Shown piece by piece: positions 1,162 to 64,000 of a stretch of 64,000 nucleotides of DNA. Source of the stretch: Schmidtea nova (taxonomy: Eukaryota); the NCBI GenBank assembly GCA_044892505.1, contig CM097882.1, forward strand, positions 251,844,001-251,908,000, in the 5' to 3' direction. The notes under the pieces are model-generated. The model saw only the letters and a list, made by a program, of their open reading frames with translations, made no database searches and had not been told where the DNA came from. The position numbers and the translations under genes were made by a program. Positions within the stretch are counted from its first letter, which is position 1, and every line of letters starts with the position of its first letter.

Positions 1162-1247
1162 AAAAGGATCCGTTGTTGCAGACACGTCAGTAGAATTTAT
1201 TTCTACATTTGCTAGTGCGAATATCACTAAGAATTATGATATAATAT
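1162..1247 (+). CDS. Exon encoding the C-terminal half of SEA domain 1 (xKGSVVADTSVEFISTFASANITKNYDII)
   Basis: GSVV motif at 1166-1177, in the same frame as array 1. 19 of the first 21 nt match the exon start at 36593, and both differences are synonymous third positions. Confidence 0.75.
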
Positions 1248-4200
1248 GTAACTTTATGGTTTAATTACAATCAAATTATAATAACTTTTAATAAGTCAAT
1301 ATAACAAACAAGCCAAATGAAGGCTCTACGGGCACATCAATCAAGTCAAGTAGCCAACCAGAATTGTCTTCGAAATCACCAGAGAAAACGAGTGAGAAAT
1401 CATCAAGTCTGAGTAGCGTCGAAAGTTCGTCAACTGTATCGTCAACATCTTCAGCAACATCAACGACTGGAACAAGAAGCAGTGAAAGTTCTACAGTAAA
1501 ACCTATCGAAAGCTCAACAAGCATTTCATCTAGTGAGAAAACAAGTGTGACAAGTTCAGAACAACCGACGACATCAAGCAGACAAACCTCGAGCTCAATA
1601 GGAAGCACTAGTCCTTCAATTGAAACGTCATCAACGCCCGTAACAGTCACATCAATCAAGTCAAGTAGCCAACCAGAATTGTCTTCGAAATCACCAGAGA
1701 AAACGAGTGAGAAATCATCAAGTCTGAGTAGCGTCGAAAGTTCGTCAACTGTATCGTCAACATCTTCAGCAACATCAACGACTGGAACAAGAAGCAGTGA
1801 AAGTTCTACAGTAAAACCTATCGAAAGCTCAACAAGCATTTCATCTAGTGAGAAAACAAGTGTGACAAGTTCAGAACAACCGACGACATCTAGCAGACAA
1901 ACCTCGAGCTCAATACGAAGCACTAGTCCTTCAATTGAAACGTCATCAACGCCCGTAACAGTCACATCAATCAAGTCAAGTAGCCAACCAGAATTGTCTT
2001 CGAAATCACCAGAGAAAACGAGTGAGAAATCATCAAGTCTGAGTAGCGTCGAAAGTTCGTCAACTGTATCGTCAACATCTTCAGCAACATCAACGACTGG
2101 AACAAGAAGCAGTGAAAGTTCTACAGTAAAACCTATCGAAAGCTCAACAAGCATTTCATCTAGTGAGAAAACAAGTGTGACAAGTTCAGAACAACCGACG
2201 ACATCAAGCAGACAAACCTCGAGCTCAATACGAAGCACTAGTCCTTCAATTGAAACGTCATCAACGCCCGTAACAGTCACATCAATCAAGTCAAGTAGCC
2301 AACCAGAATTGTCTTCGAAATCACCAGAGAAAACGAGTGAGAAATCATCAAGTCTGAGTAGCGTCGAAAGTTCGTCAACTGTATCGTCAACATCTTCAGC
2401 AACATCAACGACTGGAACAAGAAGCAGTGAAAGTTCTACAGTAAAACCTATCGAAAGCTCAACAAGCATTTCATCTAGTGAGAAAACAAGTGTGACAAGT
2501 TCAGAACAACCGACGACATCAAGCAGACAAACGTCGAGCTCAATAGGAAGCACTAGTCCTTCAATTGAAACGTCATCAACGCCCGTAACAGTCACATCAA
2601 TCAAGTCAAGTAGCCAACCAGAATTGTCTTCGAAATCACCAGAGAAAACGAGTGAGAAATCATCAAGTCTGAGTAGCGTCGAAAGTTCGTCAACTGTATC
2701 GTCAACATCTTCAGCAACATCAACGACTGGAACAAGAAGCAGTGAAAGTTCTACAGTAAAACCTATCGAAAGCTCAACAAGCATTTCATCTAGTGAGAAA
2801 ACAAGTGTGACAAGTTCAGAACAACCGACGACATCAAGCAGACAAACCTCGAGCTCAATACGAAGCACTAGTCCTTCAATTGAAACGTCATCAACGCCCG
2901 TAACAGTCACATCAATCAAGTCAAGTAGCCAACCAGAATTGTCTTCGAAATCACCAGAGAAAACGAGTGAGAAATCATCAAGTCTGATTAGCGTCGAAAG
3001 TTCGTCAACTGTATCGTCAACATCTTCAGCAACATCAACGACTGGAACAAGAAGCAGTGAAAGTTCTACAGTAAAACCTATCGAAAGCTCAACAAGCATT
3101 TCATCTAGTGAGAAAACAAGTGTGACAAGTTCAGAACAACCGACGACATCAAGCAGACAAACGTCGAGCTCAATAGGAAGCACTAGTCCTTCAATTGAAA
3201 CGTCATCAACGCCCGTAACAGTCACATCAATCAAGTCAAGTAGCCAACCAGAATTGTCTTCGAAATCACCAGAGAAAACGAGTGAGAAATCATCAAGTCT
3301 GAGTAGCGTCGAAAGTTCGTCAACTGTATCGTCAACATCTTCAGCAACATCAACGACTGGAACAAGAAGCAGTGAAAGTTCTACAGTAAAACCTATCGAA
3401 AGCTCAACAAGCATTTCATCTAGTGAGAAAACAAGTGTGACAAGTTCAGAACAACCGACGACATCAAGCAGACAAACCTCGAGCTCAATACGAAGCACTA
3501 GTCCTTCAATTGAAACGTCATCAACGCCCGTAACAGTCACATCAATCAAGTCAAGTAGCCAACCAGAATTGTCTTCGAAATCACCAGAGAAAACGAGTGA
3601 GAAATCATCAAGTCTGAGTAGCGTCGAAAGTTCGTCAACTGTATTGTCAACATCTTCAGCAACATCAACGACTGGAACAAGAAGCAGTGAAAGTTCTACA
3701 GTAAAACCTATCGAAAGCTCAACAAGCATTTCATCTAGTGAGAAAACAAGTGTGACAAGTTCAGAATCACCGACGACATCAAGCAGACAAACGTCGAGCT
3801 CAATAGGAAGCACTAGTCCTTCAATTGAAACGTCATCAACGCCCGTAACAGTCACATCAATCAAGTCAAGTAGCCAACCAGAATTGTCTTCGAAATCACC
3901 AGAGAAAACGAGTGAGAAATCATCAAGTCTGAGTAGCGTCGAAAGTTCGTCAACTGTATCGTCAACATCTTCAGCAACATCAACGACTGGAACAAGAAGC
4001 AGTGAAAGTTCTACAGTAAAACCTATCGAAAGCTCAACAAGCATTTCATCTAGTGAGAAAACAAGTGTGACAAGTTCAGAACAACCGACGACATCAAGCA
4101 GACAAACCTCGAGCTCAATAGGAAGCACTAGTCCTTCAATTGAAACGTCATCAACGCCCGTAACAGTCACATCAATCAAGTCAAGTAGCCAACCAGAATT

Positions 4201-7200
4201 GTCTTCGAAATCACCAGAGAAAACGAGTGAGAAATCATCAAGTCTGAGTAGCGTCGAAAGTTCGTCAACTGTATCGTCAACATCTTCAGCAACATCAACG
4301 ACTGGAACAAGAAGCAGTGAAAGTTCTACAGTAAAACCTATCGAAAGCTCAACAAGCATTTCATCTAGTGAGAAAACAAGTGTGACAAGTTCAGAACAAC
4401 CGACGACATCTAGCAGACAAACCTCGAGCTCAATACGAAGCACTAGTCCTTCAATTGAAACGTCATCAACGCCCGTAACAGTCACATCAATCAAGTCAAG
4501 TAGCCAACCAGAATTGTCTTCGAAATCACCAGAGAAAACGAGTGAGAAATCATCAAGTCTGAGTAGCGTCGAAAGTTCGTCAACTGTATCGTCAACATCT
4601 TCAGCAACATCAACGACTGGAACAAGAAGCAGTGAAAGTTCTACAGTAAAACCTATCGAAAGCTCAACAAGCATTTCATCTAGTGAGAAAACAAGTGTGA
4701 CAAGTTCAGAACAACCGACGACATCAAGCAGACAAACGTCGAGCTCAATAGGAAGCACTAGTCCTTCAATTGAAACGTCATCAACGCCCGTAACAGTCAC
4801 ATCAATCAAGTCAAGTAGCCAACCAGAATTGTCTTCGAAATCACCAGAGAAAACGAGTGAGAAATCATCAAGTCTGAGTAGCGTCGAAAGTTCGTCAACT
4901 GTATCGTCAACATCTTCAGCAACATCAACGACTGGAACAAGAAGCAGTGAAAGTTCTACAGTAAAACCTATCGAAAGCTCAACAAGCATTTCATCTAGTG
5001 AGAAAACAAGTGTGACAAGTTCAGAACAACCGACGACATCAAGCAGACAAACCTCGAGCTCAATACGAAGCACTAGTCCTTCAATTGAAACGTCATCAAC
5101 GCCCGTAACAGTCACATCAATCAAGTCAAGTAGCCAACCAGAATTGTCTTCGAAATCACCAGAGAAAACGAGTGAGAAATCATCAAGTCTGATTAGCGTC
5201 GAAAGTTCGTCAACTGTATCGTCAACATCTTCAGCAACATCAACGACTGGAACAAGAAGCAGTGAAAGTTCTACAGTAAAACCTATCGAAAGCTCAACAA
5301 GCATTTCATCTAGTGAGAAAACAAGTGTGACAAGTTCAGAACAACCGACGACATCAAGCAGACAAACGTCGAGCTCAATAGGAAGCACTAGTCCTTCAAT
5401 TGAAACGTCATCAACGCCCGTAACAGTCACATCAATCAAGTCAAGTAGCCAACCAGAATTGTCTTCGAAATCACCAGAGAAAACGAGTGAGAAATCATCA
5501 AGTCTGAGTAGCGTCGAAAGTTCGTCAACTGTATCGTCAACATCTTCAGCAACATCAACGACTGGAACAAGAAGCAGTGAAAGTTCTACAGTAAAACCTA
5601 TCGAAAGCTCAACAAGCATTTCATCTAGTGAGAAAACAAGTGTGACAAGTTCAGAACAACCGACGACATCAAGCAGACAAACCTCGAGCTCAATACGAAG
5701 CACTAGTCCTTCAATTGAAACGTCATCAACGCCCGTAACAGTCACATCAATCAAGTCAAGTAGCCAACCAGAATTGTCTTCGAAATCACCAGAGAAAACG
5801 AGTGAGAAATCATCAAGTCTGAGTAGCGTCGAAAGTTCGTCAACTGTATTGTCAACATCTTCAGCAACATCAACGACTGGAACAAGAAGCAGTGAAAGTT
5901 CTACAGTAAAACCTATCGAAAGCTCAACAAGCATTTCATCTAGTGAGAAAACAAGTGTGACAAGTTCAGAACAACCGACGACATCAAGCAGACAAACCTC
6001 GAGCTCAATACGAAGCACTAGTCCTTCAATTGAAACGTCATCAACGCCCGTAACAGTCACATCAATCAGGTCAAGTAGCCAACCAGAATTGTCTTCGAAA
6101 TCACCAGAGAAAACGAGTGAGAAATCATCAAGTCTGAGTAGCGTCGAAAGTTCGTCAACTGTATCGTCAACATCTTCAGCAACATCAACGACTGGAACAA
6201 GAAGCAGTGAAAGTTCTACAGTAAAACCTATCGAAAGCTCAACAAGCATTTCATCTAGTGAGAAAACAAGTGTGACAAGTTCAGAACAACCGACGACATC
6301 AAGCAGACAAACCTCGAGCTCAATAGGAAGCACTAGTCCTTCAATTGAAACGTCATCAACGCCCGTAACAGTCACATCAATCAAGTCAAGTAGCCAACCA
6401 GAATTGTCTTCGAAATCACCAGAGAAAACGAGTGAGAAATCATCAAGTCTGAGTAGCGTCGAAAGTTCGTCAACTGTATCGTCAACATCTTCAGCAACAT
6501 CAACGACTGGAACAAGAAGCAGTGAAAGTTCTACAGTAAAACCTATCGAAAGCTCAACAAGCATTTCATCTAGTGAGAAAACAAGTGTGACAAGTTCAGA
6601 ACAACCGACGACATCAAGCAGACAAACCTCGAGCTCAATAGGAAGCACTAGTCCTTCAATTGAAACGTCATCAACGCCCGTAACAGTCACATCAATCAAG
6701 TCAAGTAGCCAACCAGAATTGTCTTCGAAATCACCAGAGAAAACGAGTGAGAAATCATCAAGTCTGAGTAGCGTCGAAAGTTCGTCAACTGTATCGTCAA
6801 CATCTTCAGCAACATCAACGACTGGAACAAGAAGCAGTGAAAGTTCTACAGTAAAACCTATCGAAAGCTCAACAAGCATTTCATCTAGTGAGAAAACAAG
6901 TGTGACAAGTTCAGAACAACCGACGACATCAAGCAGACAAACCTCGAGCTCAATAGGAAGCACTAGTCCTTCAATTGAAACGTCATCAACGCCCGTAACA
7001 GTCACATCAATCAAGTCAAGTAGCCAACCAGAATTGTCTTCGAAATCACCAGAGAAAACGAGTGAGAAATCATCAAGTCTGAGTAGCGTCGAAAGTTCGT
7101 CAACTGTATCGTCAACATCTTCAGCAACATCAACGACTGGAACAAGAAGCAGTGAAAGTTCTACAGTAAAACCTATCGAAAGCTCAACAAGCATTTCATC

Positions 7201-10200
7201 TAGTGAGAAAACAAGTGTGACAAGTTCAGAACAACCGACGACATCAAGCAGACAAACCTCGAGCTCAATAGGAAGCACTAGTCCTTCAATTGAAACGTCA
7301 TCAACGCCCGTAACAGTCACATCAATCAAGTCAAGTAGCCAACCAGAATTGTCTTCGAAATCACCAGAGAAAACGAGTGAGAAATCATCAAGTCTGAGTA
7401 GCGTCGAAAGTTCGTCAACTGTATCGTCAACATCTTCAGCAACATCAACGACTGGAACAAGAAGCAGTGAAAGTTCTACAGTAAAACCTATCGAAAGCTC
7501 AACAAGCATTTCATCTAGTGAGAAAACAAGTGTGACAAGTTCAGAACAACCGACGACATCAGGCAGACAAACGTCGAGCTCAATAGGAAGCACTAGTCCT
7601 TCAATTGAAACGTCATCAACGCCCGTAACAGTCACATCAATCAAGTCAAGTAGCCAACCAGAATTGTCTTCGAAATCACCAGAGAAAACGAGTGAGAAAT
7701 CATCAAGTCTGAGTAGCGTCGAAAGTTCGTCAACTGTATCGTCAACATCTTCAGCAACATCAACGACTGGAACAAGAAGCAGTGAAAGTTCTACAGTAAA
7801 ACCTATCGAAAGCTCAACAAGCATTTCATCTAGTGAGAAAACAAGTGTGACAAGTTCAGAACAACCGACGACATCAAGCAGACAAACGTCGAGCTCAATA
7901 GGAAGCACTAGTCCTTCAATTGAAACGTCATCAACGCCCGTAACAGTCACATCAATCAAGTCAAGTAGCCAACCAGAATTGTCTTCGAAATCACCAGAGA
8001 AAACGAGTGAGAAATCATCAAGTCTGAGTAGCGTCGAAAGTTCGTCAACTGTATCGTCAACATCTTCAGCAACATCAACGACTGGAACAAGAAGCAGTGA
8101 AAGTTCTACAGTAAAACCTATCGAAAGCTCAACAAGCATTTCATCTAGTGAGAAAACAAGTGTGACAAGTTCAGAACAACCGACGACATCAAGCAGACAA
8201 ACGTCGAGCTCAATAGGAAGCACTAGTCCTTCAATTGAAACGTCATCAACGCCCGTAACAGTCACATCAATCAAGTCAAGTAGCCAACCAGAATTGTCTT
8301 CGAAATCACCAGAGAAAACGAGTGAGAAATCATCAAGTCTGAGTAGCGTCGAAAGTTCGTCAACTGTATCGTCAACATCTTCAGCAACATCAACGACTGG
8401 AACAAGAAGCAGTGAAAGTTCTACAGTAAAACCTATCGAAAGCTCAACAAGCATTTCATCTAGTGAGAAAACAAGTGTGACAAGTTCAGAACAACCGACG
8501 ACATCAAGCAGACAAACGTCGAGCTCAATAGGAAGCACTAGTCCTTCAATTGAAACGTCATCAACGCCCGTAACAGTCACATCAATCAAGTCAAGTAGCC
8601 AACCAGAATTGTCTTCGAAATCACCAGAGAAAACGAGTGAGAAATCATCAAGTCTGAGTAGCGTCGAAAGTTCGTCAACTGTATCGTCAACATCTTCAGC
8701 AACATCAACGACTGGAACAAGAAGCAGTGAAAGTTCTACAGTAAAACCTATCGAAAGCTCAACAAGCATTTCATCTAGTGAGAAAACAAGTGTGACAAGT
8801 TCAGAACAACCGACGACATCAAGCAGACAAACCTCGAGCTCAATAGGAAGCACTAGTCCTTCAATTGAAACGTCATCAACGCCCGTAACAGTCACATCAA
8901 TCAAGTCAAGTAGCCAACCAGAATTGTCTTCGAAATCACCAGAGAAAACGAGTGAGAAATCATCAAGTCTGAGTAGCGTCGAAAGTTCGTCAACTGTATT
9001 GTCAACATCTTCAGCAACATCAACGACTGGAACAAGAAGCATTGAAAGTTCTACAGTAAAACCTATCGAAAGCTCAACAAGCATTTCATCTAGTGAGAAA
9101 ACAAGTGTGACAAGTTCAGAATCACCGACGACATCAAGCAGACAAACCTCGAGCTCAATAGGAAGCACTAGTCCTTCAATTGAAACGTCATCAACGCCCG
9201 TAACAGTCACATCAATCAAGTCAAGTAGCCAACCAGAATTGTCTTCGAAATCACCAGGGAAAACGAGTGAGAAATCATCAAGTCTGATTAGCGTCGAAAG
9301 TTCGTCAACTGTATCGTCAACATCTTCAGCAACATCAACGACTGGAACAAGAAGCAGTGAAAGTTCTACAGTAAAACCTATCGAAAGCTCAACAAGCATT
9401 TCATCTAGTGAGAAAACAAGTGTGACAAGTTCAGAATCACCGACGACATCAAGCAGACAAACCTCGAGCTCAATACGAAGCACTAGTCCTTCAATTGAAA
9501 CGTCATCAACGCCCGTAACAGTCACATCAATCAAGTCAAGTAGCCAACCAGAATTGTCTTCGAAATCACCAGAGAAAACGAGTGAGAAATCATCAAGTCT
9601 GAGTAGCGTCGAAAGTTCGTCAACTGTATTGTCAACATCTTCAGCAACATCAACGACTGGAACAAGAAGCATTGAAAGTTCTACAGTAAAACCTATCGAA
9701 AGCTCAACAAGCATTTCATCTAGTGAGAAAACAAGTGTGACAAGTTCAGAATCACCGACGACATCAAGCAGACAAACCTCGAGCTCAATACGAAGCACTA
9801 GTCCTTCAATTGAAACGTCATCAACGCCCGTAACAGTCACATCAATCAAGTCAAGTAGCCAACCAGAATTGTCTTCGAAATCACCAGAGAAAACGAGTGA
9901 GAAATCATCAAGTCTGAGTAGCGTCGAAAGTTCGTCAACTGTATCGTCAACATCTTCAGCAACATCAACGACTGGAACAAGAAGCATTGAAAGTTCTACA
10001 GTAAAACCTATCGAAAGCTCAACAAGCATTTCATCTAGTGAGAAAACAAGTGTGACAAGTTCAGAATCACCGACGACATCAAGCAGACAAACGTCGAGCT
10101 CAATAGGAAGCACTAGTCCTTCAATTGAAACGTCATCAACGCCCGTAACAGTCACATCAATCAAGTCAAGTAGCCAACCAGAATTGTCTTCGAAATCACC

Positions 10201-13200
10201 AGAGAAAACGAGTGAGAAATCATCAAGTCTGAGTAGCGTCGAAAGTTCGTCAACTGTATTGTCAACATCTTCAGCAACATCAACGACTGGAACAAGAAGC
10301 AGTGAAAGTTCTACAGTAAAACCTATCGAAAGCTCAACAAGCATTTCATCTAGTGAGAAAACAAGTGTGACAAGTTCAGAACAACCGACGACATCAAGCA
10401 GACAAACCTCGAGCTCAATAGGAAGCACTAGTCCTTCAATTGAAACGTCATCAACGCCCGTAACAGTCACATCAATCAAGTCAAGTAGCCAACCAGAATT
10501 GTCTTCGAAATCACCAGAGAAAACGAGTGAGAAATCATCAAGTCTGAGTAGCGTCGAAAGTTCGTCAACTGTATCGTCAACATCTTCAGCAACATCAACG
10601 ACTGGAACAAGAAGCAGTGAAAGTTCTACAGTAAAACCTATCGAAAGCTCAACAAGCATTTCATCTAGTGAGAAAACAAGTGTGACAAGTTCAGAACAAC
10701 CGACGACATCAAGCAGACAAACCTCGAGCTCAATACGAAGCACTAGTCCTTCAATTGAAACGTCATCAACGCCCGTAACAGTCACATCAATCAAGTCAAG
10801 TAGCCAACCAGAATTGTCTTCGAAATCACCAGAGAAAACGAGTGAGAAATCATCAAGTCTGAGTAGCGTCGAAAGTTCGTCAACTGTATCGTCAACATCT
10901 TCAGCAACATCAACGACTGGAACAAGAAGCAGTGAAAGTTCTACAGTAAAACCTATCGAAAGCTCAACAAGCATTTCATCTAGTGAGAAAACAAGTGTGA
11001 CAAGTTCAGAATCACCGACGACATCAAGCAGACAAACGTCGAGCTCAATAGGAAGCACTAGTCCTTCAATTGAAACGTCATCAACGCCCGTAACAGTCAC
11101 ATCAATCAAGTCAAGTAGCCAACCAGAATTGTCTTCGAAATCACCAGAGAAAACGAGTGAGAAATCATCAAGTCTGAGTAGCGTCGAAAGTTCGTCAACT
11201 GTATTGTCAACATCTTCAGCAACATCAACGACTGGAACAAGAAGCAGTGAAAGTTCTACAGTAAAACCTATCGAAAGCTCAACAAGCATTTCATCTAGTG
11301 AGAAAACAAGTGTGACAAGTTCAGAACAACCGACGACATCAAGCAGACAAACCTCGAGCTCAATACGAAGCACTAGTCCTTCAATTGAAACGTCATCAAC
11401 GCCCGTAACAGTCACATCAATCAAGTCAAGTAGCCAACCAGAATTGTCTTCGAAATCACCAGAGAAAACGAGTGAGAAATCATCAAGTCTGAGTAGCGTC
11501 GAAAGTTCGTCAACTGTATCGTCAACATCTTCAGCAACATCAACGACTGGAACAAGAAGCAGTGAAAGTTCTACAGTAAAACCTATCGAAAGCTCAACAA
11601 GCATTTCATCTAGTGAGAAAACAAGTGTGACAAGTTCAGAACAACCGACGACATCAAGCAGACAAACCTCGAGCTCAATAGGAAGCACTAGTCCTTCAAT
11701 TGAAACGTCATCAACGCCCGTAACAGTCACATCAATCAAGTCAAGTAGCCAACCAGAATTGTCTTCGAAATCACCAGAGAAAACGAGTGAGAAATCATCA
11801 AGTCTGAGTAGCGTCGAAAGTTCGTCAACTGTATCGTCAACATCTTCAGCAACATCAACGACTGGAACAAGAAGCAGTGAAAGTTCTACAGTAAAACCTA
11901 TCGAAAGCTCAACAAGCATTTCATCTAGTGAGAAAACAAGTGTGACAAGTTCAGAACAACCGACGACATCAAGCAGACAAACCTCGAGCTCAATACGAAG
12001 CACTAGTCCTTCAATTGAAACGTCATCAACGCCCGTAACAGTCACATCAATCAAGTCAAGTAGCCAACCAGAATTGTCTTCGAAATCACCAGAGAAAACG
12101 AGTGAGAAATCATCAAGTCTGAGTAGCGTCGAAAGTTCGTCAACTGTATTGTCAACATCTTCAGCAACATCAACGACTGGAACAAGAAGCAGTGAAAGTT
12201 CTACAGTAAAACCTATCGAAAGCTCAACAAGCATTTCATCTAGTGAGAAAAAAAGTGTGACAAGTTCAGAACAACCGACGACATCAAGCAGACAAACGTC
12301 GAGCTCAATAGGAAGCACTAGTCCTTCAATTGAAACGTCATCAACGCCCGTAACAGTCACATCAATCAAGTCAAGTAGCCAACCAGAATTGTCTTCGAAA
12401 TCACCAGAGAAAACGAGTGAGAAATCATCAAGTCTGAGTAGCGTCGAAAGTTCGTCAACTGTATCGTCAACATCTTCAGCAACATCAACGACTGGAACAA
12501 GAAGCAGTAAAAGTTCTACAGTAAAACCTATCGAAAGCTCAACAAGCATTTCATCTAGTGAGAAAACAAGTGTGACAAGTTCAGAACAACTGACGACATC
12601 AAGCAGACAAACCTCGAGCTCAATACGAAGCACTAGTCCTTCAATTGAAACGTCATCAACGCCCGTAACAGTCACATCAATCAAGTCAAGTAGCCAACCA
12701 GAATTGTCTTCGAAATCACCAGAGAAAACGAGTGAGAAATCATCAAGTCTGAGTAGCGTCGAAAGTTCGTCAACTGTATTGTCAACATCTTCAGCAACAT
12801 CAACGACTGGAACAAGAAGCAGTGAAAGTTCTACAGTAAAACCTATCGAAAGCTCAACAAGCATTTCATCTAGTGAGAAAACAAGTGTGACAAGTTCAGA
12901 ACAACCGACGACATCAAGCAGACAAACGTCGAGCTCAATAGGAAGCACTAGTCCTTCAATTGAAACGTCATCAACGCCCGTAACAGTCACATCAATCAAG
13001 TCAAGTAGCCAACCAGAATTGTCTTCGAAATCACCAGAGAAAACGAGTGAGAAATCATCAAGTCTGAGTAGCGTCGAAAGTTCGTCAACTGTATTGTCAA
13101 CATCTTCAGCAACATCAACGACTGGAACAAGAAGCAGTGAAAGTTCTACAGTAAAACCTATCGAAAGCTCAACAAGCATTTCATCTAGTGAGAAAACAAG

Positions 13201-16200
13201 TGTGACAAGTTCAGAATCACCGACGACATCAAGCAGACAAACGTCGAGCTCAATACGAAGCACTAGTCCTTCAATTGAAACGTCATCAACGCCCGTAACA
13301 GTCACATCAATCAAGTCAAGTAGCCAACCAGAATTGTCTTCGAAATCACCAGAGAAAACGAGTGAGAAATCATCAAGTCTGATTAGCGTCGAAAGTTCGT
13401 CAACTGTATCGTCAACATCTTCAGCAACATCAACGACTGGAACAAGAAGCAGTGAAAGTTCTACAGTAAAACCTATCGAAAGCTCAACAAGCATTTCATC
13501 TAGTGAGAAAACAAGTGTGACACGTTCAGAATCACCGACGACATCAAGCAGACAAACCTCGAGCTCAATACGAAGCACTAGTCCTTCAATTGAAACGTCA
13601 TCAACGCCCGTAACAGTCACATCAATCAAGTCAAGTAGCCAACCAGAATTGTCTTCGAAATCACCAGAGAAAACGAGTGAGAAATCATCAAGTCTGATTA
13701 GCGTCGAAAGTTCGTCAACTGTATCGTCAACATCTTCAGCAACATCAACGACTGGAACAAGAAGCAGTGAAAGTTCTACAGTAAAACCTATCGAAAGCTC
13801 AACAAGCATTTCATCTAGTGAGAAAACAAGTGTGACAAGTTCAGAACAACCGACGACATCAAGCAGACAAACCTCGAGCTCAATACGAAGCACTAGTCCT
13901 TCAATTGAAACGTCATCAACGCCCGTAACAGTCACATCAATCAAGTCAAGTAGCCAACCAGAATTGTCTTCGAAATCACCAGAGAAAACGAGTGAGAAAT
14001 CATCAAGTCTGAGTAGCGTCGAAAGTTCGTCAACTGTATCGTCAACATCTTCAGCAACATCAACGACTGGAACAAGAAGCAGTGAAAGTTCTACAGTAAA
14101 ACCTATCGAAAGCTCAACAAGCATTTCATCTAGTGAGAAAACAAGTGTGACAAGTTCAGAACAACCGACGACATCAAGCAGACAAACCTCGAGCTCAATA
14201 CGAAGCACTAGTCCTTCAATTGAAACGTCATCAACGCCCGTAACAGTCACATCAATCAAGTCAAGTAGCCAACCAGAATTGTCTTCGAAATCACCAGAGA
14301 AAACGAGTGAGAAATCATCAAGTCTGAGTAGCGTCGAAAGTTCGTCAACTGTATTGTCAACATCTTCAGCAACATCAACGACTGGAACAAGAAGCAGTGA
14401 AAGTTCTACAGTAAAACCTATCGAAAGCTCAACAAGCATTTCATCTAGTGAGAAAACAAGTGTGACAAGTTCAGAATCACCGACGACATCAAGCAGACAA
14501 ACGTCGAGCTCAATACGAAGCACTAGTCCTTCAATTGAAACGTCATCAACGCCCGTAACAGTCACATCAATCAAGTCAAGTAGCCAACCAGAATTGTCTT
14601 CGAAATCACCAGAGAAAACGAGTGAGAAATCATCAAGTCTGATTAGCGTCGAAAGTTCGTCAACTGTATCGTCAACATCTTCAGCAACATCAACGACTGG
14701 AACAAGAAGCAGTGAAAGTTCTACAGTAAAACCTATCGAAAGCTCAACAAGCATTTCATCTAGTGAGAAAACAAGTGTGACACGTTCAGAATCACCGACG
14801 ACATCAAGCAGACAAACCTCGAGCTCAATACGAAGCACTAGTCCTTCAATTGAAACGTCATCAACGCCCGTAACAGTCACATCAATCAAGTCAAGTAGCC
14901 AACCAGAATTGTCTTCGAAATCACCAGAGAAAACGAGTGAGAAATCATCAAGTCTGATTAGCGTCGAAAGTTCGTCAACTGTATCGTCAACATCTTCAGC
15001 AACATCAACGACTGGAACAAGAAGCAGTGAAAGTTCTACAGTAAAACCTATCGAAAGCTCAACAAGCATTTCATCTAGTGAGAAAACAAGTGTGACAAGT
15101 TCAGAACAACCGACGACATCAAGCAGACAAACCTCGAGCTCAATACGAAGCACTAGTCCTTCAATTGAAACGTCATCAACGCCCGTAACAGTCACATCAA
15201 TCAAGTCAAGTAGCCAACCAGAATTGTCTTCGAAATCACCAGAGAAAACGAGTGAGAAATCATCAAGTCTGAGTAGCGTCGAAAGTTCGTCAACTGTATC
15301 GTCAACATCTTCAGCAACATCAACGACTGGAACAAGAAGCAGTGAAAGTTCTACAGTAAAACCTATCGAAAGCTCAACAAGCATTTCATCTAGTGAGAAA
15401 ACAAGTGTGACAAGTTCAGAACAACCGACGACATCAAGCAGACAAACCTCGAGCTCAATACGAAGCACTAGTCCTTCAATTGAAACGTCATCAACGCCCG
15501 TAACAGTCACATCAATCAAGTCAAGTAGCCAACCAGAATTGTCTTCGAAATCACCAGAGAAAACGAGTGAGAAATCATCAAGTCTGAGTAGCGTCGAAAG
15601 TTCGTCAACTGTATCGTCAACATCTTCAGCAACATCAACGACTGGAACAAGAAGCAGTGAAAGTTCTACAGTAAAACCTATCGAAAGCTCAACAAGCATT
15701 TCATCTAGTGAGAAAACAAGTGTGACAAGTTCAGAACAACCGACGACATCAAGCAGACAAACCTCGAGCTCAATAGGAAGCACTAGTCCTTCAATTGAAA
15801 CGTCATCAACGCCCGTAACAGTCACATCAATCAAGTCAAGTAGCCAACCAGAATTGTCTTCGAAATCACCAGAGAAAACGAGTGAGAAATCATCAAGTCT
15901 GAGTAGCGTCGAAAGTTCGTCAACTGTATCGTCAACATCTTCAGCAACATCAACGACTGGAACAAGAAGCAGTGAAAGTTCTACAGTAAAACCTATCGAA
16001 AGCTCAACAAGCATTTCATCTAGTGAGAAAACAAGTGTGACAAGTTCAGAACAACCGACGACATCAAGCAGACAAACCTCGAGCTCAATACGAAGCACTA
16101 GTCCTTCAATTGAAACGTCATCAACGCCCGTAACAGTCACATCAATCAAGTCAAGTAGCCAACCAGAATTGTCTTCGAAATCACCAGAGAAAACGAGTGA

Positions 16201-19200
16201 GAAATCATCAAGTCTGAGTAGCGTCGAAAGTTCGTCAACTGTATTGTCAACATCTTCAGCAACATCAACGACTGGAACAAGAAGCAGTGAAAGTTCTACA
16301 GTAAAACCTATCGAAAGCTCAACAAGCATTTCATCTAGTGAGAAAACAAGTGTGACAAGTTCAGAACAACCGACGACATCAAGCAGACAAACGTCGAGCT
16401 CAATAGGAAGCACTAGTCCTTCAATTGAAACGTCATCAACGCCCGTAACAGTCACATCAATCAAGTCAAGTAGCCAACCAGAATTGTCTTCGAAATCACC
16501 AGAGAAAACGAGTGAGAAATCATCAAGTCTGAGTAGCGTCGAAAGTTCGTCAACTGTATCGTCAACATCTTCAGCAACATCAACGACTGGAACAAGAAGC
16601 AGTGAAAGTTCTACAGTAAAACCTATCGAAAGCTCAACAAGCATTTCATCTAGTGAGAAAACAAGTGTGACAAGTTCAGAATCACCAACGACATCAAGCA
16701 GACAAACGTCGAGCTCAATAGGAAGCACTAGTCCTTCAATTGAAACGTCATCAACGCCCGTAACAGTCACATCAATCAAGTCAAGTAGCCAACCAGAATT
16801 GTCTTCGAAATCACCAGAGAAAACGAGTGAGAAATCATCAAGTCTGAGTAGCGTCGAAAGTTCGTCAACTGTATTGTCAACATCTTCAGCAACATCAACG
16901 ACTGGAACAAGAAGCAGTGAAAGTTCTACAGCAAAACCTATCGAAAGCTCAACAAGCATTTCATCTAGTGAGAAAACAAGTGTGACAAGTTCAGAATCAC
17001 CGACGACATCAAGCAGACAAACCTCGAGCTCAATACGAAGCACTAGTCCTTCAATTGAAACGTCATCAACGCCCGTAACAGTCACATCAATCAAGTCAAG
17101 TAGCCAACCAGAATTGTCTTCGAAATCACCAGAGAAAACGAGTGAGAAATCATCAAGTCTGAGTAGCGTCGAAAGTTCGTCAACTGTATCGTCAACATCT
17201 TCAGAAACATCAACGACTGGAACAAGAAGCAGTGAAAGTTCTACAGTAAAACCTATCGAAAGCTCAACAAGCATTTCATCTAGTGAGAAAACAAGTGAGA
17301 CAAGTTCAGAATCACCGACGACATCAAGCAGACAAACCTCGAGCTCAATACGAAGCACTAGTCCTTCAATTGAAACGTCATCAACGCCCGTAACAGTCAC
17401 ATCAATCAAGTCAAGTAGCCAACCAGAATTGTCTTCGAAATCACCAGAGAAAACGAGTGAGAAATCATCAAGTCTGAGTAGCGTCGAAAGTTCGTCAACT
17501 GTATCGTCAACATCTTCAGCAACATCAACGACTGGAACAAGAAGCAGTGAAAGTTCTACAGTAAAACCTATCGAAAGCTCAACAAGCATTTCATCTAGTG
17601 AGAAAACAAGTGTGACAAGTTCAGAACAACCGACGACATCAAGCAGACAAACGTCGAGCTCAATAGGAAGCACTAGTCCTTCAATTGAAACGTCATCAAC
17701 GCCCGTAACAGTCACATCAATCAAGTCAAGTAGCCAACCAGAATTGTCTTCGAAATCACCAGAGAAAACGAGTGAGAAATCATCAAGTCTGAGTAGCGTC
17801 GAAAGTTCGTCAACTGTATTGTCAACATCTTCAGCAACATCAACGACTGGAACAAGAAGCAGTGAAAGTTCTACAGTAAAATCTATCGAAAGCTCAACAA
17901 GCATTTCATCTAGTGAGAAAACAAGTGTGACAAGTTCAGAATCACCGACGACATCAAGCAGACAAACCTCGAGCTCAATAGGAAGCACTAGTCCTTCAAT
18001 TGAAACGTCATCAACGCCCGTAACAGTTACATCAATCAAGTCAAGTAGCCAACCAGAATTGTCTTCGAAATCACCAGAGAAAACGAGTGAGAAATCATCA
18101 AGTCTGAGTAGCGTCGAAAGTTCGTCAACTGTATCGTCAACATCTTCAGCAACATCAACGACTGGAACAAGAAGCAGTGAAAGTTCTACAGTAAAACCTA
18201 TCGAAAGCTCAACAAGCATTTCATCTAGTGAGAAAACAAGTGTGACAAGTTCAGAATCACCGACGACATCAAGCAGACAAACCTCGAGCTCAATACGAAG
18301 CACTAGTCCTTCAATTGAAACGTCATCAACGCCCGTAACAGTCACATCAATCAAGTCAAGTAGCCAACCAGAATTGTCTTCGAAATCACCAGAGAAAACG
18401 AGTGAGAAATCATCAAGTCTGAGTAGCGTCGAAAGTTCGTCATCTGTATCGTCAACATCTTCAGCAACATCAACGACTGGAACAAGAAGCAGTGAAAGTT
18501 CTACAGTAAAACCTATCGAAAGCTCAACAAGCATTTCATCTAGTGAGAAAACAAGTGTGACAAGTGCAGAATCACCGACGACATCAAGCAGACAAACCTC
18601 GAGCTCAATAGGAAGCACTAGTCCTTCAATTGAAACGTCATCAACGCCCGTAACAGTCACATCAATCAAGTCAAGTAGCCAACCAGAATTGTCTTCGAAA
18701 TCACCAGAGAAAACGAGTGAGAAATCATCAAGTCTGAGTAGCGTCGAAAGTTCGTCAACTGTATCGTCAACATCTTCAGCAACATCAACGACTGGAACAA
18801 GAAGCAGTGAAAGTTCTACAGTAAAACCTATCGAAAGCTCAACAAGCATTTCATCTAGTGAGAAAACAAGTGTGACAAGTTCAGAACAACCGACGACATC
18901 AAGCAGACAAACGTCGAGCTCAATACGAACCACTAGTCCTTCAATTGAAACGTCATCAACGCCCGTAACAGTCACATCAATCAGGTCAAGTAGCCAACCA
19001 GAATTGTCTTCGAAATCACCAGAGAAAACGAGTGAGAAATCATCAAGTCTGAGTAGCGTCGAAAGTTCGTCAACTGTATCGTCAACATCTTCAGCAACAT
19101 CAACGACTGGAACAAGAAGCAGTGAAAGTTCTACAGTAAAACCTATCGAAAGCTCAACAAGCATTTCATCTAGTGAGAAAACAAGTGTGACAAGTTCAGA

Positions 19201-22200
19201 ACAACCGACGACATCAAGCAGACAAACCTCGAGCTCAATACGAAGCACTAGTCCTTCAATTGAAACGTCATCAACGCCCGTAACAGTCACATCAATCAAG
19301 TCAAGTAGCCAACCAGAATTGTCTTCGAAATCACCAGAGAAAACGAGTGAGAAATCATCAAGTCTGAGTAGCGTCGAAAGTTCGTCAACTGTATCGTCAA
19401 CATCTTCAGCAACATCAACGACTGGAACAAGAAGCAGTGAAAGTTCTACAGTAAAACCTATCGAAAGCTCAACAAGCATTTCATCTAGTGAGAAAACAAG
19501 TGTGACAAGTTCAGAACAACCGACGACATCAAGCAGACAAACCTCGAGCTCAATACGAAGCACTAGTCCTTCAATTGAAACGTCATCAACGCCCGTAACA
19601 GTCACATCAATCAAGTCAAGTAGCCAACCAGAATTGTCTTCGAAATCACCAGAGAAAACGAGTGAGAAATCATCAAGTCTGAGTAGCGTCGAAAGTTCGT
19701 CAACTGTATTGTCAACATCTTCAGCAACATCAACGACTGGAACAAGAAGCAGTGAAAGTTCTACAGTAAAACCTATCGAAAGCTCAACAAGCATTTCATC
19801 TAGTGAGAAAACAAGTGTGACAAGTTCAGAACAACCGACGACATCAAGCAGACAAACGTCGAGCTCAATACGAAGCACTAGTCCTTCAATTGAAACGTCA
19901 TCAACGCCCGTAACAGTCACATCAATCAAGTCAAGTAGCCAACCAGAATTGTCTTCGAAATCACCAGAGAAAACGAGTGAGAAATCATCAAGTCTGAGTA
20001 GCGTCGAAAGTTCGTCAACTGTATCGTCAACATCTTCAGCAACATCAACGACTGGAACAAGAAGCAGTGAAAGTTCTACAGTAAAACCTATCGAAAGCTC
20101 AACAAGCATTTCATCTAGTGAGAAAACAAGTGTGACAAGTTCAGAACAACCGACGACATCAAGCAGACAAACGTCGAGCTCAATACGAAGCACTAGTCCT
20201 TCAATTGAAACGTCATCAACGCCCGTAACAGTCACATCAATCAAGTCAAGTAGCCAACCAGAATTGTCTTCGAAATCACCAGAGAAAACGAGTGAGAAAT
20301 CATCAAGTCTGAGTAGCGTCGAAAGTTCGTCAACTGTATTGTCAACATCTTCAGCAACATCAACGACTGGAACAAGAAGCAGTGAAAGTTCTACAGTAAA
20401 ATCTATCGAAAGCTCAACAAGCATTTCATCTAGTGAGAAAACAAGTGTGACAAGTTCAGAATCACCGACGACATCAAGCAGACAAACCTCGAGCTCAATA
20501 GGAAGCACTAGTCCTTCAATTGAAACGTCATCAACGCCCGTAACAGTTACATCAATCAAGTCAAGTAGCCAACCAGAATTGTCTTCGAAATCACCAGAGA
20601 AAACGAGTGAGAAATCATCAAGTCTGAGTAGCGTCGAAAGTTCGTCAACTGTATCGTCAACATCTTCAGCAACATCAACGACTGGAACAAGAAGCAGTGA
20701 AAGTTCTACAGTAAAACCTATCGAAAGCTCAACAAGCATTTCATCTAGTGAGAAAACAAGTGTGACAAGTTCAGAATCACCGACGACATCAAGCAGACAA
20801 ACCTCGAGCTCAATACGAAGCACTAGTCCTTCAATTGAAACGTCATCAACGCCCGTAACAGTCACATCAATCAAGTCAAGTAGCCAACCAGAATTGTCTT
20901 CGAAATCACCAGAGAAAACGAGTGAGAAATCATCAAGTCTGAGTAGCGTCGAAAGTTCGTCATCTGTATCGTCAACATCTTCAGCAACATCAACGACTGG
21001 AACAAGAAGCAGTGAAAGTTCTACAGTAAAACCTATCGAAAGCTCAACAAGCATTTCATCTAGTGAGAAAACAAGTGTGACAAGTGCAGAATCACCGACG
21101 ACATCAAGCAGACAAACCTCGAGCTCAATAGGAAGCACTAGTCCTTCAATTGAAACGTCATCAACGCCCGTAACAGTCACATCAATCAAGTCAAGTAGCC
21201 AACCAGAATTGTCTTCGAAATCACCAGAGAAAACGAGTGAGAAATCATCAAGTCTGAGTAGCGTCGAAAGTTCGTCAACTGTATCGTCAACATCTTCAGC
21301 AACATCAACGACTGGAACAAGAAGCAGTGAAAGTTCTACAGTAAAACCTATCGAAAGCTCAACAAGCATTTCATCTAGTGAGAAAACAAGTGTGACAAGT
21401 TCAGAACAACCGACGACATCAAGCAGACAAACCTCGAGCTCAATACGAAGCACTAGTCCTTCAATTGAAACGTCATCAACGCCCGTAACAGTCACATCAA
21501 TCAGGTCAAGTAGCCAACCAGAATTGTCTTCGAAATCACCAGAGAAAACGAGTGAGAAATCATCAAGTCTGAGTAGCGTCGAAAGTTCGTCAACTGTATC
21601 GTCAACATCTTCAGCAACATCAACGACTGGAACAAGAAGCAGTGAAAGTTCTACAGTAAAACCTATCGAAAGCTCAACAAGCATTTCATCTAGTGAGAAA
21701 ACAAGTGTGACAAGTTCAGAACAACCGACGACATCAAGCAGACAAACCTCGAGCTCAATACGAAGCACTAGTCCTTCAATTGAAACGTCATCAACGCCCG
21801 TAACAGTCACATCAATCAAGTCAAGTAGCCAACCAGAATTGTCTTCGAAATCACCAGAGAAAACGAGTGAGAAATCATCAAGTCTGAGTAGCGTCGAAAG
21901 TTCGTCAACTGTATCGTCAACATCTTCAGCAACATCAACGACTGGAACAAGAAGCAGTGAAAGTTCTACAGTAAAACCTATCGAAAGCTCAACAAGCATT
22001 TCATCTAGTGAGAAAACAAGTGTGACAAGTTCAGAACAACCGACGACATCAAGCAGACAAACCTCGAGCTCAATACGAAGCACTAGTCCTTCAATTGAAA
22101 CGTCATCAACGCCCGTAACAGTCACATCAATCAAGTCAAGTAGCCAACCAGAATTGTCTTCGAAATCACCAGAGAAAACGAGTGAGAAATCATCAAGTCT

Positions 22201-61200: not shown

Positions 61201-64000
61201 CAGGAACGATTGAAACAAGTTCAAGTATGTCATCCACACCATTGTCTACTGGCACGTCAGAAAGAAGCTCGACTATCAAATCATCAAGTGTATCAGAAAT
61301 CAGTAGTACAGCTAGCACAGGAAAATCATCGGAAGTAACTTCGACCTTATCTCCATCAGGCACATCAATTTCACAAACATCTCCTACAATTGCCTCAGAA
61401 ACCAAATCCTCTACTGGTTCAGTACCGACTTCAAGTACTTCAGGAACGATTGAAACAAGTTCAAGTATGTCATCCACACCATTGTCTACTGGCACGTCAG
61501 AAAGAAGCTCGACTATCAAATCATCAAGTGTATCAGAAATCAGTAGTACAGCTAGCACAGGAAAATCATCGGAAGTAACTTCGACCTTATCTCCATCAGG
61601 CACATCAATTTCACAAACATCTCCTACAATTGCCTCAGAAACCAAATCCTCTACTGGTTCAGTACCGACTTCAAGTACTTCAGGAACGATTGAAACAAGT
61701 TCAAGTATGTCATCCACACCATTGTCTACTGGCACGTCAGAAAGAAGCTCGACTATCAAATCATCAAGTGTATCAGAAATCAGTAGTACAGCTAGCACAG
61801 GAAAATCATCGGAAGTAACTTCGACCTTATCTCCATCAGGCACATCAATTTCACAAACATCTCCTACAATTGCCTCAGAAACCAAATCCTCTACTGGTTC
61901 AGTACCGACTTCAAGTACTTCAGGAACGATTGAAACAAGTTCAAGTATGTCATCCACACCATTGTCTACTGGCACGTCAGAAAGAAGCTCGACTATCAAA
62001 TCATCAAGTGTATCAGAAATCAGTAGTACAGCTAGCACAGGAAAATCATCGGAAGTAACTTCGACCTTATCTCCATCAGGCACATCAATTTCACAAACAT
62101 CTCCTACAATTGCCTCAGAAACCAAATCCTCTACTGGTTCAGTACCGACTTCAAGTACTTCAGGAACGATTGAAACAAGTTCAAGTATGTCATCCACACC
62201 ATTGTCTACTGGCACGTCAGAAAGAAGCTCGACTATCAAATCATCAAGTGTATCAGAAATCAGTAGTACAGCTAGCACAGGAAAATCATCGGAAGTAACT
62301 TCGACCTTATCTCCATCAGGCACATCAATTTCACAAACATCTCCTACAATTGCCTCAGAAACCAAATCCTCTACTGGTTCAGTACCGACTTCAAGTACTT
62401 CAGGAACGATTGAAACAAGTTCAAGTATGTCATCCACACCATTGTCTACTGGCACGTCAGAAAGAAGCTCGACTATCAAATCATCAAGTGTATCAGAAAT
62501 CAGTAGTACAGCTAGCACAGGAAAATCATCGGAAGTAACTTCGACCTTATCTCCATCAGGCACATCAATTTCACAAACATCTCCTACAATTGCCTCAGAA
62601 ACCAAATCCTCTACTGGTTCAGTACCGACTTCAAGTACTTCAGGAACGATTGAAACAAGTTCAAGTATGTCATCCACACCATTGTCTACTGGCACGTCAG
62701 AAAGAAGCTCGACTATCAAATCATCAAGTGTATCAGAAATCAGTAGTACAGCTAGCACAGGAAAATCATCGGAAGTAACTTCGACCTTATCTCCATCAGG
62801 CACATCAATTTCACAAACATCTCCTACAATTGCCTCAGAAACCAAATCCTCTACTGGTTCAGTACCGACTTCAAGTACTTCAGGAACGATTGAAACAAGT
62901 TCAAGTATGTCATCCACACCATTGTCTACTGGCACGTCAGAAAGAAGCTCGACTATCAAATCATCAAGTGTATCAGAAATCAGTAGTACAGCTAGCACAG
63001 GAAAATCATCGGAAGTAACTTCGACCTTATCTCCATCAGGCACATCAATTTCACAAACATCTCCTACAATTGCCTCAGAAACCAAATCCTCTACTGGTTC
63101 AGTACCGACTTCAAGTACTTCAGGAACGATTGAAACAAGTTCAAGTATGTCATCCACACCATTGTCTACTGGCACGTCAGAAAGAAGCTCGACTATCAAA
63201 TCATCAAGTGTATCAGAAATCAGTAGTACAGCTAGCACAGGAAAATCATCGGAAGTAACTTCGACCTTATCTCCATCAGGCACATCAATTTCACAAACAT
63301 CTCCTACAATTGCCTCAGAAACCAAATCCTCTACTGGTTCAGTACCGACTTCAAGTACTTCAGGAACGATTGAAACAAGTTCAAGTATGTCATCCACACC
63401 ATTGTCTACTGGCACGTCAGAAAGAAGCTCGACTATCAAATCATCAAGTGTATCAGAAATCAGTAGTACAGCTAGCACAGGAAAATCATCGGAAGTAACT
63501 TCGACCTTATCTCCATCAGGCACATCAATTTCACAAACATCTCCTACAATTGCCTCAGAAACCAAATCCTCTACTGGTTCAGTACCGACTTCAAGTACTT
63601 CAGGAACGATTGAAACAAGTTCAAGTATGTCATCCACACCATTGTCTACTGGCACGTCAGAAAGAAGCTCGACTATCAAATCATCAAGTGTATCAGAAAT
63701 CAGTAGTACAGCTAGCACAGGAAAATCATCGGAAGTAACTTCGACCTTATCTCCATCAGGCACATCAATTTCACAAACATCTCCTACAATTGCCTCAGAA
63801 ACCAAATCCTCTACTGGTTCAGTACCGACTTCAAGTACTTCAGGAACGATTGAAACAAGTTCAAGTATGTCATCCACACCATTGTCTACTGGCACGTCAG
63901 AAAGAAGCTCGACTATCAAATCATCAAGTGTATCAGAAATCAGTAGTACAGCTAGCACAGGAAAATCATCGGAAGTAACTTCGACCTTATCTCCATCAGG
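1162..64000 (+). CDS. Partial multi-exon gene for a giant SEA-domain mucin-like glycoprotein; model join(1162..1247,1296..35964,36593..>64000), about 20,720 codons, start and stop outside the window
   Basis: The frame stays continuous across GT-AG junctions. Two S/T-rich tandem arrays are separated by a SEA-like domain with GSVVA. There is no initiator or signal peptide and no terminal stop in the window. The 1248-1295 junction is the weakest part of the model. Confidence 0.85.
1248..1295 (+). other. Putative 48-nt phase-1 intron (GTAACT...ttttaatAAG)
   Basis: Removing it deletes three in-frame TAA codons (1262, 1289, 1292) and keeps the frame (DII-F-NITNKPNEGSTG). It has only 8 G/C in 48 nt. 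The acceptor is weak, and an alternative in-frame pair 1259..1312 exists. Confidence 0.5.
1296..35964 (+). CDS. Giant exon (about 34.7 kb): PTS array 1 plus the N-terminal half of SEA domain 2
   Basis: The frame is open from 1295 to the donor CG|GTAAGT at 35964/35965. The track ORF 1364..35968 is this frame, but its start is an internal TTG and its TAA lies inside the donor. Confidence 0.9.
1333..35770 (+). repeat. Coding tandem array 1: 315-bp unit x 109.3, peptide TSIKSSSQPELSSKSPEKTSEKSSSLSSVESSSTVSSTSSATSTTGTRSSESSTVKPIESSTSISSSEKTSVTSSEQPTTSSRQTSSSI(G/R)STSPSIETSSTPVTV
   Basis: cacatcaatcaag occurs at 1333, 1648 and on to 35668 (=1333+109x315), so there is no net indel. The unit has 44 Ser and 19 Thr in 105 aa. 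Confidence 0.99.
35965..36592 (+). other. 628-nt phase-2 intron
   Basis: Consensus donor GTAAGT and acceptor cttatttAG, AT-rich. Splicing gives CG+A=Arg and rebuilds the FRKGSVVA motif in frame with array 2. Confidence 0.92.
36256..36319. repeat. Intronic 11-bp minisatellite (aaaatatatct), about 6 copies, two of them variant (aaaatataggt, aaaataggt)
   Basis: Read directly from the sequence. Confidence 0.9.
36593..64000 (+). CDS. Giant exon (>27.4 kb, runs off the window): C-half of SEA domain 2, a 27-aa linker and PTS array 2
   Basis: The frame starting AAA(36594) GGA TCG GTC GTT GCA has no stop up to 64000. It is absent from the ORF track, probably because it has no stop in the window. Confidence 0.9.
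36813..64000 (+). repeat. Coding tandem array 2: 240-bp unit x >=113, peptide SEISSTASTGKSSEVTSTLSPSGTSISQTSPTIASETKSSTGSVPTSSTSGTIETSSSMSSTPLSTGTSERSSTIKSSSV
   Basis: tcagaaatcag occurs at 36813, 37053 and onward, and the register is exact to the window end. The unit has 31 Ser and 17 Thr in 80 aa. Confidence 0.99.

Follow-up and report, generated by a model that had tools for sequence, protein, structure and literature searches.

The 64,000-nt stretch of Schmidtea nova DNA that was analysed (the window) probably lies inside a single, very large protein-coding gene on the + strand, and this gene would encode a mucin-like modular glycoprotein. In each module of the product, one SEA domain would precede a giant tandem array rich in Ser and Thr. 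With the introns removed, positions 1298 to 64000 gave 20,691 codons without a stop, corresponding to a polypeptide of 2.05 MDa, and both arrays, together with the SEA exons, are likely to make up a single spliced frame that stays open for about 20,700 codons across predicted junctions. The first-pass annotation had reported about 20,700 aa encoded in the window, two different arrays of about 11,500 and more than 9,000 aa, splice sites at 35964/36593 and a gene open at both window ends, and all of this was borne out: both arrays were recovered by Tandem Repeats Finder, a consensus donor and acceptor were found at these two positions, and the 5' and 3' gene ends both lie outside the window, with its 3' edge falling inside array 2. 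The features are listed in the table.

Table. Features of the predicted giant mucin-like gene in the 64,000-nt window.
Feature	Position	Strand	Description
Intron, 3' part	1..1161	+	GC 20.9%; TTTTAG at 1156-1161
SEA module 1, C-terminal piece, 28 codons	1162..1247	+	Starts KGSVVA
Candidate 48-nt mini-intron	1248..1295	+	GTAACT...AATAAG; contains all three TAA codons
Linker to array 1	1296..1332	+	Short; in frame with array 1
Array 1	1333-35770	+	315-bp unit, 109.3 copies (Tandem Repeats Finder)
SEA module 2, N-terminal half	35771..35964	+	In frame with array 1; ends at donor CG/GTAAGT
Intron, 628 nt	35965..36592	+	Consensus donor/acceptor; GC 22.6%
SEA module 2, C-terminal half (KGSVVAES...) + linker	36593..36812	+	In frame with array 2
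Array 2	36813-64000	+	240-bp unit, 113.3 copies; continues past window end (Tandem Repeats Finder)

Array 1 encoded a 105-aa Ser/Thr-rich repeat of about 11,480 aa in all, within a + strand ORF of 11,534 aa (1364..35968), and array 2 encoded an 80-aa Ser/Thr-rich repeat of at least 9,060 aa, whose frame was open to the window end. The units were very similar to each other, with 98% matches in array 1, 99% in array 2 and 0% indels in both (Tandem Repeats Finder). Both consensus units contained 60% Ser+Thr and 5-6% Pro, and the whole spliced product was composed of 40% Ser, 19% Thr and 5.4% Pro. Mucins are marked by long Ser/Thr/Pro-rich tandem repeats, along with dense O-glycosylation and a signal peptide for the secretory pathway. 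Such repeats were present in both arrays, the Pro content being low compared with a classical PTS region. Homology between the 315-bp and the 240-bp units did not rise above shuffled controls, and no Pfam match was obtained with array units alone. Cys was absent across the 20,691 aa and no VWD match was revealed by Pfam; the VWD-C8-TIL arrangement of gel-forming mucins, with Cys-rich VWD regions flanking the PTS region, was not found within the window, which does not reach either end of the gene.

Both array periods were multiples of three, 0 indels occurred in 222 units, and about 62 kb could be read in the array/SEA frame without one frameshift or stop. The 37 distinct variants of array 1 included 0 stops, with about 2.3 expected. 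The minus strand was open over equal lengths (11,508 and 9,077 aa), therefore the open frame alone proves nothing, and it was the SEA match, together with the splice signals described below, that settled the + strand and its frame. The minus-strand reading was rejected, with units rich in Asp, Val, Leu and Glu; its one Pfam match above the cut-off (Gasdermin, 25.4 bits) was summed from three identical short stretches and spanned 42 of the 240 profile positions. Synonymous and non-synonymous variants numbered 11 and 26 within array 1, and 7 and 16 within array 2, both near the neutral expectation. Within-array variation showed no sign of selection, and the open frame may reflect recent homogenisation.

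Array 1 read in frame into 64 unique codons up to the donor at 35964|35965 (CG/GTAAGT), and the acceptor at 36592|36593 was TTATTTAG/A. This 628-nt intron interrupts a codon between its second and third bases, one codon 5' of the G-S site. The spliced peptide matched Pfam SEA (PF01390) at E 2.2e-5 and 25.0 bits over profile positions 11-100 of 106, in agreement with the SEA domain proposed earlier at this junction, with a score 1.4 bits below the gathering cut-off of 26.4 bits. Neither unspliced half gave a Pfam match, so the SEA domain is complete only across the 628-nt intron. Judged from its sequence, what lies between the arrays is a SEA domain, interrupted by an intron one codon ahead of the Gly-Ser site, and it was the only complete SEA within the window. 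Its junction region was present in four DNA runs of one study, none of them RNA. A very improbable alternative is that at least two transcription units exist, with transcripts ending in the 628-nt intron and array 2 belonging to another gene or isoform. The unspliced frame does meet a TAA at 35966, directly after the donor, and the intron contains four AATAAA/ATTAAA-like hexamers, for which chance would account at 23% GC; against such an ending stand the SEA domain that needs both exons, the exon at 36593 with no Met ahead of array 2 and no signal peptide, and the recurrence of the identical exon boundary at 1162.

With the exon of the N-terminal half, phmmer against 1.84 billion proteins gave two multi-SEA proteins as the best two matches, a 10-SEA fish protein (E 3.8e-11) and a 4-SEA sturgeon protein (E 2.9e-7). 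A profile search retrieved 124 proteins, nearly all with PF01390, the best of which was named IMPG1. BLASTP alignments to four of them (IMPG1-type SEA) crossed the splice junction, with FRKGSVV conserved. Identity to SEA module 2 was 32% over 104 columns for Poecilia IMPG1 and 39% over 83 columns for a sturgeon protein (BLASTP), and both alignments ran through FR(K/N)GSV. Word-indexed protein searches with the SEA N-half region and with the SEA C-half plus array 2 found no close relatives, the ESM Atlas look-up with the SEA C-half gave no usable match, and a phmmer search of PDB sequences with the spliced peptide gave no SEA, only noise at E >=0.1. Against ten fish SEA domains, hhalign found a match of 31 columns only, at a probability of 21%.

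The SEA fold is an alpha/beta fold with the order strand-helix-strand-strand-helix-strand, and the hairpin that joins strands 2 and 3 carries its Gly-Ser site. Two AlphaFold2 models of SEA module 2 were of low confidence (mean pLDDT 50.8 and 50.5). The second contained helices at 29-46 and 85-92 and strands at 54-62 and 65-73 with a turn at K-G between them, which is the expected SEA order of elements, with the C-terminal half below pLDDT 50. Foldseek of the model (mean pLDDT about 50) against PDB gave no match.

Upstream of 1162 the longest stop-free stretch on the + strand was at most 53 codons. At this boundary the split-codon phase was identical to that at 36593, and the acceptor with the first 28 nt matched module 2 at 26/28, both differences being synonymous. 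Beyond the acceptor and KGSVVA the two modules were unalignable, and similarity of their SEA C-halves did not exceed shuffled controls. The shared exon boundary and KGSVVA motif point to at least one more module upstream, and the SEA N-terminal exon of module 1 lies upstream of the window start.

Three in-frame TAA codons (1262, 1289 and 1292) were found between the module 1 piece and array 1, and they would be removed only by the candidate mini-intron, whose excision (1248-1295) restored the array 1 frame. Its GC content was 16.7%, which is intron-like compared with 31-42% in the flanking exons, and its signals were weak, with a GTAACT donor and an AAG acceptor. Its length is within the 45-85 bp at which short introns of planarians peak (PMC13594981). 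The array-1 frame contained a single Met, therefore translation must start upstream. If the TAA codons at 1262-1294 were real stops, the gene would be broken or truncated: the upstream protein would end at 1262, and array 1, the SEA domain and array 2 would be untranslated or recently dead, with frames still open because the repeats are young and homogenised. The three stops, the weak mini-intron signals, the absence of a selection signal among within-array variants and the equally open minus strand would all be in line with such a broken gene, which is nevertheless unlikely in view of the 62 kb free of frameshift or stop, the intact second SEA with its consensus splice sites, and a motif conserved through synonymous changes. 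The stop-bearing 48 nt itself also argues for splicing, since it combines intron-like GC and planarian-typical size (PMC13594981) with GT..AG in the sole frame-restoring register.

The motif in both SEA modules was G-S-V-V-A, and between modules 1 and 2 it was kept with synonymous DNA changes only. Self-cleaving SEA domains follow the rule G-S-x-x-V, where x is V or I (PMC9478142); in the planarian motif Gly, the Ser nucleophile and V-V were present, and the fifth residue was Ala, not Val.

In array 2, 83 of the 113 units were identical. The first 47 units were marked by variants, and among the last 66 units 64 were identical, forming a near-perfect repeat of about 15.8 kb that reaches the window end; because of this run, the copy number and assembled length of array 2 are uncertain. 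Array 1 contained 45 distinct unit types, with interspersed variants and ordered multi-unit block duplications. The gene could thus be real while its size is a product of assembly, with repeats longer than the reads over- or under-extended and the figures of 11,500 and 9,000 aa unreliable. The many identical units of array 2, above all the run at the window end, favour this view, which we consider rather unlikely overall, as the unit types, variants and blocks of array 1 allow unique read placement, and the variant-marked first 47 units of array 2 likewise speak against it.

The predicted one-gene product was compared with known SEA-bearing proteins. The best sequence matches of SEA module 2 were IMPG1/IMPG2 (SPACR/SPACRCAN), vertebrate interphotoreceptor matrix proteoglycans, which are alike in their layout of SEA, mucin-like segment and SEA, and in which SEA-2 cuts itself (PMC9478142). 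In IMPG proteins (89-138 kDa) a single short mucin-like segment precedes the EGF domains, and IMPG2 also has a membrane anchor, whereas the planarian segments measure about 11,500 and over 9,000 aa and no EGF or anchor was visible within the window. The planarian motif ends in Ala and the IMPG-type motif in Val, and the likeness extends over a single domain at 32-39% identity.

MUC16 (CA125), a giant mucin of about 14,500 aa, begins its SEA part after a very long region rich in Ser and Thr; there, numerous SEA domains take turns with O-glycosylated linkers, in SEA-containing repeats of 156 aa. Its inter-SEA linkers are tens of residues long and most of its SEA domains are without the cleavage motif, whereas each inter-SEA segment of the planarian gene is of giant-mucin size and G-S-V-V is retained in both visible modules. 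In MUC1, MUC3, MUC12, MUC13, MUC17 and the cnidarian mucin1-like proteins, too, a SEA comes after a Ser/Thr-rich tandem array, and in these proteins it is self-cleaving; invertebrate SEA-bearing mucin-like proteins have been described in a sea anemone (PMC9080433). Membrane mucins of the MUC1 type have one SEA adjoining the membrane, with a transmembrane segment and a cytoplasmic tail next to it, while in the planarian gene the SEA stands between two arrays. The top match of the N-half exon was XP_034533091.1, a 'FLO11-like' multi-SEA protein of fish, 1,602 aa long, whose ten Pfam SEA domains are joined by short Thr/Pro linkers of about 25-40 aa; it differs in that the similarity is restricted to the N-terminal SEA motif and in that its SEA domains are without the G-S site.

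The first-pass annotation had proposed a separate mucin class with SEA domains interleaved with the arrays. The interleaving holds for the one complete SEA between the arrays, while at 1162 only the 28-codon C-terminal piece was found. The separate class could not be kept, as SEA and mucin-like segments also take turns in MUC16 and IMPG1/IMPG2, and the best matches were of the IMPG-type SEA. What is new here is the scale of the segments between SEA domains, the SEA/mucin alternation being already known.

If translated, the arrays would receive dense O-glycosylation in the secretory pathway and stretch out as rods. With roughly 0.25 nm per residue, each would be about 2-3 micrometres long. Each SEA would fold in the endoplasmic reticulum. 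It may also cleave itself at the Gly-Ser bond, and the cut halves would then remain together non-covalently, giving a chain of megadalton rods. In MUC1-type SEA domains the halves stay non-covalently bound after self-cleavage and part under force (PMC12191488), and by analogy the links of the planarian product may part under mechanical load. A 'break-away chain' mucin, in which a product of well over 20,000 residues with several self-cleaving SEA domains becomes a series of non-covalently joined, megadalton, micrometre-long glycan rods with shear-parting links, is put forward tentatively, as a possibility that we would not yet favour. If true, it would place a mechanical fuse at regular intervals in planarian mucus or the surface coat. 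That the protein serves in surface or secreted mucus is a guess that draws on the biology of the animal.

Planarians need mucus to glide, adhere and defend themselves. Should the gene be expressed as predicted, its SEA domains would be set apart by mucin segments of 9,000-11,500 residues, a scale undescribed for MUC16 or IMPG, and the product would count as one of the largest proteins of animals. It would also offer a natural system for the role of repeated, possibly self-cleaving SEA links in a polymer as compared with a membrane. From planarians, mucin-like genes have so far been reported only of the VWD type (PMC7117911), and a SEA-type giant mucin, if true, would fill a gap beside them. 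Such genes are easily missed in annotations because single exons consist of 27-35 kb of near-perfect repeat.

Two blocks of tandem repeats were delimited by Tandem Repeats Finder (see the table), with a GC content of 42% within them versus 21-29% elsewhere in the window. Array 1 corresponds to about 11,480 aa and array 2 to at least 9,060 aa, which agrees with the arrays of about 11,500 and more than 9,000 aa described in the first-pass annotation. On the plus strand each consensus unit had a single open frame, encoding a 105-aa repeat in array 1 and an 80-aa repeat in array 2, both with 60% Ser+Thr and 5-6% Pro. The minus strand was also open, with Asp/Val/Leu/Glu-rich ORFs of 11,508 aa (1288-35814) and 9,077 aa (36725-63958), so the open frame is a property of the repeat and alone is no evidence of a gene. 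A Pfam Gasdermin match on the minus strand (25.4 bits, just over the cut-off), covering three units of the second ORF, was the sum of three short identical stretches; such an artefact could lead automatic annotation astray.

Tandem repeat arrays in the window (Tandem Repeats Finder)
Feature	Coordinates	Period (bp)	Copies	Matches	Indels
Array 1	1333-35770	315	109.3	98%	0
Array 2	36813-64000	240	113.3	99%	0

Past the end of array 1, its frame carried on through 64 unique codons to a consensus donor (CG/GTAAGT), where the exon ended at 35964. Then 628 AT-rich bases and an acceptor (TTATTTAG/A) were followed by an exon starting at 36593, which encoded KGSVVAES... and ran unbroken and in frame with array 2. 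No Pfam family was matched by either exon half separately, while the spliced junction peptide matched SEA (PF01390) in a single stretch over profile positions 11-100 of 106 (E 2.2e-5), its 25.0 bits being slightly below the gathering score of 26.4. With the exon of the N-terminal half alone, phmmer against 1.84 billion representative proteins gave as its best match (E 3.8e-11) a wrasse protein in which Pfam SEA occurs ten times; the second (E 2.9e-7) was from a sturgeon and has four SEA domains. Of the 124 proteins retrieved by a profile search, almost all contained PF01390, and the top one bore the name interphotoreceptor matrix proteoglycan 1. When the spliced peptide was compared with these proteins by BLASTP, 70 matches were obtained, including four alignments spanning the exon junction; those to the sturgeon protein P0002 and to Poecilia IMPG1 (P0006) included a shared FR(K/N)GSV motif. 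Because of these homology results, the plus strand is read as the coding strand and the domain between the arrays, as earlier claimed, is assigned to SEA; the splice joining 35964 to 36593 is very likely genuine. Structure prediction gave no added support, as two AlphaFold2 models of the SEA peptide had pLDDT of about 50 each; in the second, a turn at K-G joined two strands into the expected hairpin, but the C-terminal half of the model was unreliable, and a Foldseek search with the predicted model gave no match.

The SEA domain is complete only across the intron, and the exon at 36593 had neither a Met ahead of array 2 nor a signal peptide, so the two arrays would share one reading frame. The spliced frame (1298-64000) comprised 20,691 codons with no stop, in keeping with the proposed minimum of about 20,700 aa, and would give a polypeptide of 2.05 MDa with no Cys. 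Only one Met was found in the frame of array 1 (at 27533), so this array could be translated solely from upstream. Seven N-glycosylation sequons only were present in the spliced frame. In four runs from one study, none recorded as RNA, 74-89% of the words sampled from 35500-37050 were present, including the intron. The locus is real as sequence and is probably a genuine gene.

At the left edge, the acceptor and the first 28 nt of the 36593 exon recurred at 1162, with 26 of 28 positions identical and both differences synonymous. The module boundary is therefore conserved, and the exon for the N-terminal half of this upstream SEA (module 1) would lie beyond the window; by analogy, a further array may be located there. 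The earlier idea of an interleaved SEA series stood for the domain between the arrays and for the recurring acceptor and KGSVVA. The two modules could not be aligned in the introns before or the coding sequence after this stretch. Conservation between 1156-1189 and 36587-36620 was sharply local, confined to the acceptor and KGSVVA, the putative cleavage-site codons. After 28 codons of the module 1 exon, three in-frame TAA were met (1262, 1289 and 1292), and excision of a 48-nt GT..AG interval (1248-1295) eliminated all three and regained the frame. This candidate mini-intron had an intron-like GC content of 16.7% (31-42% in the flanking exons), and planarian genes have a prominent intron class of 45-85 bp (PMC13594981). 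Its splice signals were weak (GTAACT donor and AAG acceptor), so that its removal is inferred. A short ATCATG-type microsatellite-like run was seen in the presumed intron at the window start (1-45).

Membrane mucins typically carry SEA beside their mucin arrays, and in MUC16 SEA alternates with mucin-like segments. The same alternation was reported for IMPG1/2 (PMC9478142), so a beads-on-a-string mucin class of its own, as first proposed, could not be maintained. SEA-bearing mucin-like proteins also occur in invertebrates, such as a sea anemone (PMC9080433). The planarian literature describes VWD-type mucin-like genes only (PMC7117911). The present locus differs from known SEA/mucin proteins in the size of its inter-SEA segments (about 11,480 aa for array 1, at least 9,060 aa for array 2), its Ser-rich and Pro-poor composition and its host; the ten SEA domains of the wrasse protein, in contrast, are separated by short linkers. 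No close relative was found in the protein collections searched.

MUC1-type SEA cuts itself between Gly and Ser while folding in the endoplasmic reticulum, and its halves remain non-covalently bound until the link separates under mechanical stress (PMC12191488). IMPG1 and IMPG2 are cleaved at the SEA-2 domain, and the published motif is GSxxV, where x is V or I (PMC9478142). Both predicted modules carried GSVVA, so Gly-Ser self-cleavage is plausible from the retained Gly and Ser nucleophile, though the fifth residue differs. Cleavage, if it takes place, would yield a chain in which separable SEA joints link rods of about 1.1 MDa each, counting only the protein mass. The protein may be O-glycosylated and secreted, with a possible role in mucus.

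When cut in register, the 113 units of array 2 fell into 20 types, with 83 identical. In its last part (48093-64000), 64 of the final 66 units were identical, and this near-perfect stretch of 240-bp repeat extends over about 15.8 kb to the window end, which makes the copy number uncertain without longer reads. The variants of array 2 were 7 synonymous and 16 non-synonymous, and those of array 1 were 11 synonymous and 26 non-synonymous with no stops, versus about 2.3 stops expected. No selection signal was detected in the variation within either array, and the arrays are young or homogenised. The 109 units of array 1 comprised 45 distinct types, each with 0-5 differences from the consensus, and ordered duplications of 4-7-unit blocks were observed, which make its assembly credible. 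They suggest that the array expanded through unequal exchange, several units at a time. At about units 38-45 a 4-unit block was present twice, and at about units 85-97 a 7-unit block was repeated, six of the seven unit types keeping their order.
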